Both the position numbers and the translations under genes were made by a program. Shown piece by piece: positions 17,146 through 19,327 of a stretch of DNA of 64,000 nt. The number at the start of each line of letters is the position of its first letter. The first letter of the stretch is position 1. The stretch is taken from positions 1 to 64,000 of the IMG/VR virus record IMGVR_UViG_3300049043_000112; one strand, written 5' to 3'. Under the pieces are notes generated by a model, which worked only from the letters and a program-made list of their open reading frames with translations, made no database searches and was not told the DNA's origin.

Positions 17146-17153
17146 TATTTAGA
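17146..17153 (-). promoter_or_regulatory. Late promoter variant TCTAAATA
   Basis: Overlaps the hsp20 stop, 12 nt upstream of the ATG at 17134. Confidence 0.6.
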
Positions 17154-17583
17154 GATAATCCTTACGTGCGTGATGCTCTGGAACTACTTTCCCAAGTATG
17201 ATCCGTAAAAGTCCGTCTTCAAATGTGACTTCGCGGACTTCTGTGTCGTCGGATAAAGTCCACGCTCGTTTAAAACTTCTGCTAGCCACTCCCTTGTGGA
17301 TAAACGTCCTATCCGATTCTGTATCTTCTTTTTGTCCCTCGACAAAAAGTTTTCCATACTCTGTGAAAACATTTACCTCTCCTTTCTTGAATCCTGCGAG
17401 TGCGAGTTCTAGATGGGATTCAACATTATTTATTTGAACCAGATTATATGGAGGATAATTAGTTGTAGTTTCGTGAAGATTGAAAATACGATCAAAATAT
17501 TCATCCATTCCAATACTATTGCGTGTAATTCTTTCCATCAAGGCAGGAAGATCCGCAGCAGTATACCTTGCAAAATTATTCAT
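17149..17583 (-). CDS. hsp20: Small heat shock protein (alpha-crystallin domain)
   Basis: NYPPYNLVQ, LALAGF, HKGVASRSFKRAWTL, FEDGLL. Confidence 0.95.
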   Translation of the reverse strand: MNNFARYTAADLPALMERITRNSIGMDEYFDRIFNLHETTTNYPPYNLVQINNVESHLELALAGFKKGEVNVFTEYGKLFVEGQKEDTESDRTFIHKGVASRSFKRAWTLSDDTEVREVTFEDGLLRIILGKVVPEHHARKDYL

Positions 17584-17638
17584 TATAGTAGCTCCTTTAA
17601 AAGCGAGTTTGTGTTTTGTGGACCCTTACGGCATCCAC
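17584..17638 (-). promoter_or_regulatory. Structured hsp20 5' leader, ROSE-like thermometer candidate
   Basis: GNRA-capped hairpin (17618-17638), then C-UCGCU-UUUAA-AGGA-G pairing the SD with a bulged G; TATAAT at 17644-17649. Confidence 0.55.
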
Positions 17639-17660
17639 ATATAATTATATTACTTCTTAC

Positions 17661-17684
17661 AAAAAAGGCGGGTGTAAAACCCGC
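17661..17684 (-). terminator. Rho-independent terminator after regA
   Basis: GCGGGT-TTTAC-ACCCGC followed by a T-tract. Confidence 0.75.
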
Positions 17685-17690
17685 TCTTTA

Positions 17691-18131
17691 TCATTCGGCA
17701 TCCTCTACCTTTTTCTTTTTGGCACCAATGTTGTACTTGGTTTCCAAAATCCAATCTCCTTTGTCCTTATAAGCAAGAACTTTGATTTGATTTAGGGGAG
17801 CGATATCCTGAATCTTCTTAACATCAACAATTTCAATCAGACCCCAATCAGCAAGAAGTTGGGCGATACGATTGCGACGTTGTACATCGTTTACAGTCAG
17901 GTTTGCGTGTTTGCCATCCAGGGCAAATAGTTCCTTAAAATGAACGAGATAATATCTACCTTGTTTGTGTAGAATATGGCAAGACTGATAAATTTTCTTT
18001 TCCTTTCTTGAAGCAACTCCGATACGGGTCAAAGTTTCACGAACTTTCAAAAAGTCATCTGGTTCATTCAGAATGACTTCCACCATTTGATCGGGCGTCC
18101 ACTTCACTTCAGGTTCTTGAACGACACTCAT
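17691..18131 (-). CDS. regA: Translational repressor
   Basis: DDFLKVRETLTRIGVAS...YQSCHILHKQGRYYLVHFKELFALDG. Confidence 0.96.
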   Translation of the reverse strand: MSVVQEPEVKWTPDQMVEVILNEPDDFLKVRETLTRIGVASRKEKKIYQSCHILHKQGRYYLVHFKELFALDGKHANLTVNDVQRRNRIAQLLADWGLIEIVDVKKIQDIAPLNQIKVLAYKDKGDWILETKYNIGAKKKKVEDAE

Positions 18132-18508
18132 TTTGTTCCTCCAGTTTCAAATTTCGATTTAATAAATGTTAGTTGTTCTTTAGTAAGAATCCTCAAAGAT
18201 TGTTTTGCCTTCTCATTACTAAAACCATAGTAACGTTTAACATAATCAAGGTCTTTGATTTTATCTTGACGGAGCCAGGGAGAAAATCTCTTCTTTTTCC
18301 TCAGACTATTTATAAAGAAGTCATATTGCATCTTTTTTGGAAGGAAATTATACCGATTCATTTCATTCGCAAACATAATACAGTCAAGGTGCCCAGACAG
18401 ACAACGATTGATGATATAGGGAGGATATTCCTTCTCAAGTGAAGGATCTTCTTCAATCAGATTCTGTTTCGTCTGATTGATTGAGTTTAACCAGTCCTTC
18501 AATTCCAT
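18128..18508 (-). CDS. gp62: Clamp loader small subunit
   Basis: MELKDWLNSIN...YPPYIINRCLS...RKKKRFSPW; true start at 18508. Confidence 0.92.
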   Translation of the reverse strand: MELKDWLNSINQTKQNLIEEDPSLEKEYPPYIINRCLSGHLDCIMFANEMNRYNFLPKKMQYDFFINSLRKKKRFSPWLRQDKIKDLDYVKRYYGFSNEKAKQSLRILTKEQLTFIKSKFETGGTK

Positions 18509-19327
18509 AATTAAAAAGCAGTAGTTCTTTACGTTGTTTTTGCTCTCGCATATATTCACCAACCGAACGCATCGTATAAGTTAAGTCAAACTCAGCAGCG
18601 TTCCAGTTCTTAAAACGGTCTTTTACAAGTTGGTCAGAGTTATAACTGACTAACTGATCCATATTGTTAGCATCGCAATCAGCAGCAAACTTATCGTGAT
18701 CAAATCCTTTGTGCATTGATCCCTTTCTGCCATAGAGATTGTCCTTAATATCATAAGGAGGATCGAGATACATAAAAGCAGTCTTATCTCCATCCATCAG
18801 ATAATCATACGAGTAATTAGTTATACGCCAATGCTCAATCAGTTTAGAATACGCAGGCAGTTTTTCGATACCCCGCATACTGAAGTTGGCGTTGGAAGCT
18901 TGTTCTGAAAATGATGAACTCTCCGTAAGACCACTGAAACTGCACTTATTGACAACATAGAAAGCCACAGCACGATCAAGATTCGACAGAAGTGGTTCAT
19001 TGATTCTGCTCCTTTGATTGGAGAAAAAGTTCTCTTGCCTTATCTGGAGTATTATACTTTGACTTAAGATTCTACAAGTTTATCTTTAAGGTCAGGTCCA
19101 AAAATCTGGAGTTGTTGCCAGAAGTTAACAAGAGGTTCATATAAATCATTTACCCAGATATCTAGGCTGGGATATTTTTTCGTGATATGAATTGCAACAC
19201 TTCCACCACCAAGAAAAGGTTCTCGGAATTGCTTATAATTACGGAGGTCTGGAAAATATGCGTCCATCTTGGTACAAGCACGGGACTTGCCGCCTGGATA
19301 CCTCAAAGGGGTTTTAAGAGATTTCAT
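18453..19327 (-). CDS. dam: DNA adenine methyltransferase (Dam/D12 class), two +1 indels (~19070, ~19005)
   Basis: TPLRYPGGKS, motif I FREPFLGGGSV, motif IV YLDPPY, terminal ELLLFNY. Confidence 0.9.

Follow-up and report, generated by a model that had tools for sequence, protein, structure and literature searches.

ROSE-like RNA thermometers lie in the 5' untranslated region (UTR) of small heat-shock (alpha-crystallin, class A or IbpA-type) genes and comprise two to four hairpins, of which the 3'-proximal one holds the Shine-Dalgarno (SD) sequence paired imperfectly with a conserved U(U/C)GCU motif, a bulged or unpaired G within this anti-SD keeping the helix labile, so that the melting of the SD hairpin and translation depend on temperature (PMC3669281). 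The classical elements of rhizobial hsp genes, such as ROSE1 of Bradyrhizobium japonicum (Rfam RF00435), have three to four hairpins and about 100 nt, whereas the ibpA genes of Pseudomonas carry a short version of roughly 60 nt with only two hairpins, in which hairpin II melts with heat, hairpin I does not, and removal of the bulged G locks the switch off (Krajewski et al. 2013, PMC3669281; Rfam ROSE_3, RF02523). The Escherichia coli ibpA leader (Rfam ROSE_2, RF01832) is longer, with three hairpins of which hairpin III is extended, and IbpA represses its own translation by binding this UTR, an activity that requires R93 and an aromatic residue at position 34 (PMC10474464). The Synechocystis hsp17 thermometer is a short leader of a cyanobacterial small heat-shock gene that masks the SD with a single hairpin lacking the U(U/C)GCU motif (PMC3669281). 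In the literature searched, we found no report linking cyanophage hsp20, or any phage small heat-shock gene, to an RNA thermometer, and a 2024 review treats viral thermometers only as speculation (PMC10884466). Here, we describe a conserved ROSE-like leader of the hsp20 gene of a freshwater cyanophage, whose response to temperature is inferred from this resemblance.

Architecture of the hsp20 leader

The window analysed is a stretch of 64,000 nucleotides from a 236-kb virus genome (IMG/VR record IMGVR_UViG_3300049043_000112), found mainly in lake and freshwater metagenomes, whose nearest isolates are the freshwater Synechococcus myoviruses S-SRM01 and DSL-LC03, both Kyanoviridae. The original prediction had placed two hairpins between a TATAAT and the hsp20 start codon, the second one pairing UCGCU with the SD around a bulged G, and had interpreted them as a ROSE-like thermometer gating the phage chaperone. 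Every base that it named is in place (Table 1), the leader being roughly 57 nt long.

Table 1. Features of the regA-hsp20 region (positions in the 64,000-nucleotide window)
Feature	Position	Strand	Description
Dam-like DNA methyltransferase	18453..19327	-	Appears split into two ORFs in different frames, the N-terminal 87 aa at 19064-19327 and 171 aa with the DPPY motif at 18453-18968; could be a frameshift, an assembly error or a pseudogene
regA	17691..18131	-	Translational repressor, upstream neighbour
Intrinsic terminator of regA	17660..17684	-	Stem 17684-17668, then a U-tract; separates the regA and hsp20 transcripts
-10 hexamer	17644..17649	-	TATAAT, no recognisable -35; inferred transcription start about 17640-17636, at the foot of hairpin I
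Hairpin I	17618..17638	-	8 bp, bulged G17632, GNRA loop GUAA (17629-17626)
Spacer	17608..17617	-	A/C-rich, unpaired
Anti-SD	17602..17607	-	CUCGCU, bulged G17604; pairs C17607:G17592, U17606:A17593, C17605:G17594, C17603:G17595 and U17602:A17596
Loop of hairpin II	17597..17601	-	UUUAA
Shine-Dalgarno	17592..17596	-	AGGAG, 3' arm of hairpin II, 8 nt before the AUG
hsp20	17149..17583	-	144-aa IbpA-like class A small heat-shock protein; AUG 17583-17581

To determine whether this arrangement could arise by chance, we first considered the single sequence. The motif CTCGCT-N3-9-AGGAG-N4-10-ATG occurs once in the window against 0.00 expected in 100 shuffles, and once in the whole genome, in which a strong SD is itself unusual, only 14 of about 360 ORFs having an AGGAG upstream. 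The energetics, by contrast, do not prove hairpin II. The whole leader folds only modestly better than shuffles (z -2.27), mostly owing to hairpin I, and the cost of opening the SD is not above that of shuffled controls (3.95 versus 3.57 +/- 1.57 kcal/mol at 20°C, 32% of shuffles being at least as high), whether the upstream region was shuffled whole or only between hairpin I and the SD, and we therefore do not take it as evidence either way. For this one sequence ViennaRNA also prefers a shifted register, GCUUU:GGAGC, which we rejected on the comparative data described below.

A terminator and promoter scan found no full sigma-70 promoter upstream of the leader. Contigs from five freshwater metatranscriptomes cover hsp20 and the leader but end at 17602-17627 and never reach further upstream, whereas DNA contigs run to 17637 and on into the -10 region of relatives, and RNA depth in the bin 17605-17651 is 5-39% of the next bin, against 82% in DNA. 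This fits a transcription start at the foot of hairpin I, but is weak evidence: the zero depth at 17652-17698 is also seen as a 30-40-fold drop in a DNA run and thus mostly reflects divergence.

Conservation and covariation among phages

Next, we sought to clarify whether the leader is maintained by selection on its structure. To this end, we collected hsp20 loci from IMG/VR with five divergent Hsp20 queries and from 23 named phages, which gave 302 leaders across Kyanoviridae and pelagimyophages. Terminators, promoters, loops and coding sequence diverge, Hsp20 being only 35-50% identical, yet the plan of the leader holds, with a TATAAT/TAAAT-type hexamer just upstream of hairpin I in most relatives. 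We discovered that 283 of the 302 leaders keep N-U-(U/C)-G-C-U...AGGA-N, as CUCGCU/AGGAG (185), GUCGCU/AGGAC (75), UUUGCU/AGGAG (16), GUUGCU/AGGAC (4) or CUUGCU/AGGAG (3). In these 283 leaders the outer pair is C:G (188), G:C (79) or U.G (16) and never mismatched (three apparent C.C mismatches, CTTGCT/AGGAC, were an artefact of the pattern search, the true anti-SD being GTCGCT), and the third pair is C:G or U.G, exactly the U(U/C)GCU alternation that defines ROSE. The conservation of the motif in other phage hsp20 leaders is clearly in favour of the original prediction. A few pelagimyophage-like leaders carry CUGCCU or CUGUCU, in which the bulged G has moved by one position, but no leader has a perfect CUCCU. 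The loop of hairpin II varies in sequence and length (2-8 nt) and is 91% A/U, and the spacer is 59% A, 24% C and 3% G over 285 leaders. The core of hairpin I, Y-(G)-CC/GG-G, is UGCC..GGG or CGCC..GGG in 276 of 298 leaders, and 208 of 298 loops are UNCG or GNRA tetraloops.

As MAFFT could not keep the SD in register across the variable loops, we built a fixed-loop seed alignment of 54 sequences and a covariance model (R1) from it. On the seed, in which the bulged G is invariant, 100% of 594 cells pair, and the covariation score is 0.352 against 0.109 in shuffles (0 of 500 reach it) and at most 0.055 when the partners are slid. On 92 sequences aligned to the model, 99.7% of cells pair, and four of six modelled hairpin I pairs and one of five hairpin II pairs change on both sides. 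RNAalifold, given no structure, returned the same fold, bulged Gs included, whereas slid registers pair only 58-64% of cells and the base after AGGAG varies (C, A or U), which argues against the register preferred by ViennaRNA. Covariation in hairpin II nonetheless rests on one pair, and largely on one clade, so that it reflects few independent events.

R1 has one full hit in the window and in the whole genome (50 bits, E 3e-14), partial hits at positions 135400 and 24953 of the genome not being followed by genes, and one hit per related locus, always in front of hsp20. In a reverse test, viral contigs were scanned for hairpin I plus CTCGCT without reference to any gene: of 80 loci, 70 are followed by hsp20, six lie too near a contig end to tell and four are chance hits, and 75 of the 80 have AGGAG although it was not part of the pattern. 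Among 151 genomes of the family of a Prochlorococcus single-cell genome, R1 gave no hit above 21 bits and none next to an hsp20 gene. MAGs labelled Acidibacter, Psychromonas, Actinomycetota and Thermoplasmata each contain a cyanomyovirus-like hsp20 locus (71-76% identity) with the phage leader, probably through phage contamination of the bins.

The surroundings of the leader vary between clades. In S-CAM1 and in some ACG-2014i-like loci an extra G/C-rich stem followed by a U-tract (terminator- or attenuator-like) lies just upstream of hairpin I, giving a three-hairpin leader; in S-CAM1 it lies between a TATAAT and hairpin I, whereas the 69 nt inspected in the ACG-2014i-like leaders show no -10 hexamer. 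Many marine relatives carry a conserved motif, TTCGTGCGG..CAC..CTACAA..TCGGAA(C/T)ACCC, between regA and the terminator, about 60-110 nt upstream of the hsp20 -10 element, which is absent from the window and for which an Rfam scan of the Bellamy copy at E up to 10 gave no credible family. Between regA and purL of Prochlorococcus phage P-SSM2 lies a full-length manA RNA (Rfam RF01745; positions 842-1039 of that locus, 181.6 bits, far above its cut-off), with no counterpart in the short regA-hsp20 spacer of the window. Finally, the GenBank hsp20 start codons of P-HM2 and S-SRM01 (positions 722 and 1111 of the respective loci) lie upstream of the leader and inside the promoter-hairpin region, whereas the conserved SD and AUG imply starts near 797 and 1162, so these coding sequences look over-extended.

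Resemblance to bacterial ibpA leaders

The only significant Rfam match in the region is ROSE_3, aligned over model positions 1-69 with both hairpins at 27.2 bits (E 0.003), below the gathering cut-off of 43, and three other phages score 24.9-30.6 bits. The numbering of the model fits the mutants delta-G39, delta-A35, C36A, C40A and CCGC23-26 described for the Pseudomonas ibpA thermometers (PMC3669281). The phage and Pseudomonas elements share a stable, G/C-rich hairpin I with GGAUGCC..GGGUCC and a bulged G, a hairpin II in which ACUCGCU pairs with AGGAG around a bulged G, and an unpaired AUG. Phage hairpin II, however, lacks the extra GA:UC pairs and is closed directly by an A/U loop, the promoter is a plain -10 element rather than of the sigma-32 type, and the carrier is a virus of cyanobacteria or SAR11. 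The element fails the Rfam threshold, which probably explains why annotation pipelines miss it, but fits every sequence-level criterion of a ROSE-like element.

The E. coli ibpA leader carries the core CUCGCU..AGGAGCUA with a bulged G, as does the phage, and its preceding hairpin also has a bulged G next to a C-rich arm. Nevertheless, no match to ROSE_2 was reported up to E 10 in the window region or up to E 0.5 in 19 related phage loci, although E. coli ibpA, as positive control, scores 100 bits. The rhizobial elements likewise have U(U/C)GCU opposite the SD, a bulged G needed for lability and a position upstream of class A genes (PMC3669281), but RF00435 had no match in the window region up to E 10. 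The comparison with Synechocystis hsp17 made in the original prediction is only loose, as that element is of another type and the host-type small heat-shock protein belongs to another class (PMC3827213).

The protein points in the same direction. The best NCBIfam models for Hsp20 are IbpA (79 bits) and IbpB (75 bits), both below cut-off, phage Hsp20s are 28-34% identical to E. coli IbpA, and published phylogeny places cyanophage small heat-shock proteins in one clade next to bacterial class A proteins and away from those of the host (PMC3827213). We sampled 29 bacterial ibpA-like loci from the class of a MAG labelled Psychromonas (presumably Gammaproteobacteria): 23 leaders have U(U/C)GCU..GGA, several have a GAUGCC..GGGUC hairpin, and most sit behind sigma-32-like promoters. 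The closest cellular look-alike found, in a 1.2-Mb genome, matches R1 over its full length at 21.8 bits and reads UUGAUGCC-UUUUA-GGGUCAA, then CUUGCU..AGGAG, behind a sigma-32-like CTTGAAA..CCATATTT promoter (at about 265 kb). A ROSE_3 scan of 151 genomes of this class gave no hit over the cut-off, a scan of genome contigs returned only phage-like contigs inside MAGs, and Rfam found no ROSE family at E up to 0.05 in 20 bacterial ibpA leaders although most carry the motif, suggesting that the Rfam models are narrow. The simplest reading is that gene and leader were captured together.

Possible modes of action

We consider it more likely than not that the leader is a zipper-type translational switch, although thermosensing and the roles of hairpin I and of the bulged G are inferred. 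Hairpin I, at the inferred 5' end, most likely protects the mRNA and lets hairpin II fold on its own. Hairpin II is a weak 5-bp helix in which the bulged G prevents a perfect anti-SD:SD duplex: its free energy is -2.4 to -3.1 kcal/mol at 20°C, -0.6 to -1.1 at 37°C and about 0 at 42°C, the mean over 64 distinct variants is -3.25 +/- 0.98 kcal/mol at 20°C, and deletion of the G in silico raises the SD-opening cost by about 3.4 kcal/mol. At ordinary host temperatures the SD would be mostly masked, and a temperature upshift, or anything else that destabilises the helix, would free it and raise translation without new transcription. The modelled probability that the SD is open rises 5.5-fold from 20 to 37°C, albeit gradually. 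As SD-led initiation is uncommon in this phage, and probably in picocyanobacteria, SD masking may matter less than in proteobacteria, and in the ACG-2014i clade AGGAC lies 0-1 nt from the AUG, too close for a canonical SD, so that hairpin II would mask the start region instead. Because the promoter is a plain -10 element, the RNA would be the only stress-responsive layer.

The most serious alternative, which does not exclude a thermometer but remains tentative, is that Hsp20 oligomers bind the leader and repress translation, as E. coli, Cedecea and Vibrio IbpA do with their own ROSE-type 5'UTRs, until clients such as aggregates or assembling capsid proteins titrate Hsp20 away, in which case the leader would sense proteostasis load rather than temperature, or both. 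All seven phage Hsp20s aligned keep the R93 equivalent, and six keep the Tyr of YPPYN (position 34) while HTVC008M has Phe, whereas IbpB has Gln at position 93; K98, on the other hand, is not conserved. Both hairpins present a bulged-G helix, and the sequence-specific core of hairpin I, which also occurs in the ROSE_3 consensus and in some of the sampled bacterial leaders, is more conserved than a mere stabiliser stem needs, suggesting recognition by a protein. More speculatively, Y(G)CC/GGG in hairpin I and C(G)CU/AGG in hairpin II might be tandem binding sites for Hsp20, the leader then being a dual sensor set jointly by temperature and by how much Hsp20 is tied up on unfolded or assembling proteins during infection, a self-contained feedback loop captured whole from a proteobacterium and kept across Kyanoviridae and pelagimyophages; we regard this as a doubtful, albeit not excluded, possibility.

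It is unlikely that the leader is a constitutive expression module, in which hairpin I only stabilises the mRNA and CUCGCU..AGGAG was inherited as part of a strong ribosome-binding region. The tetraloop-capped 5'-terminal stem, the weakness of hairpin II, the SD masking no greater than in shuffled controls and the highest word depth of the region for hsp20 contigs in one metatranscriptome (a poor measure of expression) are in line with this view, but it does not explain the invariance of CUCGCU 3-9 nt upstream of the SD, the compensatory C:G to G:C swap, the universal bulged G without a perfect complement or the G/C-free loops. Still less likely is an operator for RegA, or for another phage RNA-binding protein or nuclease: regA lies immediately upstream in this and many other phages, and RegA appears to act on ribosome-binding regions in T4, but the leader is just as conserved where hsp20 is not next to regA, as in S-RIM2, S-SM1, S-RIM8 and P-RSM3, the motif is shared by proteobacterial ibpA leaders, which have no RegA, and T4 RegA sites seem to be A/U-rich rather than CUCGCU. 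The prediction of a Pho box in the same stretch of S-PM2d (ATTCAAACTCGCTTAAATA) is very unlikely to hold, since the hsp20 upstream fragment did not bind PhoB and the gene did not respond to low phosphate (PMC10976474), the invariant bases fall on the spacer of the proposed box while its repeats vary, the site lies downstream of the -10, and covariation indicates RNA pairing.

The ROSE-like leader accounts for this conserved sequence that was mis-scored as a Pho box. hsp20 belongs to the 25-gene cyanomyovirus core, yet its role and control in infection are unknown (PMC3037559), and a ROSE-like switch in its leader offers the hypothesis that the phage tunes a chaperone after transcription, according to temperature or protein-folding stress, independently of host heat-shock sigma factors. 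It would extend ROSE-type elements from alpha- and gamma-proteobacteria to viruses and into cyanobacterial and SAR11 cells, with a regulatory RNA that probably travelled with its gene in lateral transfer. The about 300 natural variants of this minimal, roughly 47-nt scaffold have a marginal stability (5 bp plus a bulged G) that may be tuned to 10-30°C habitats, which is relevant to how warming waters affect phage-host dynamics.
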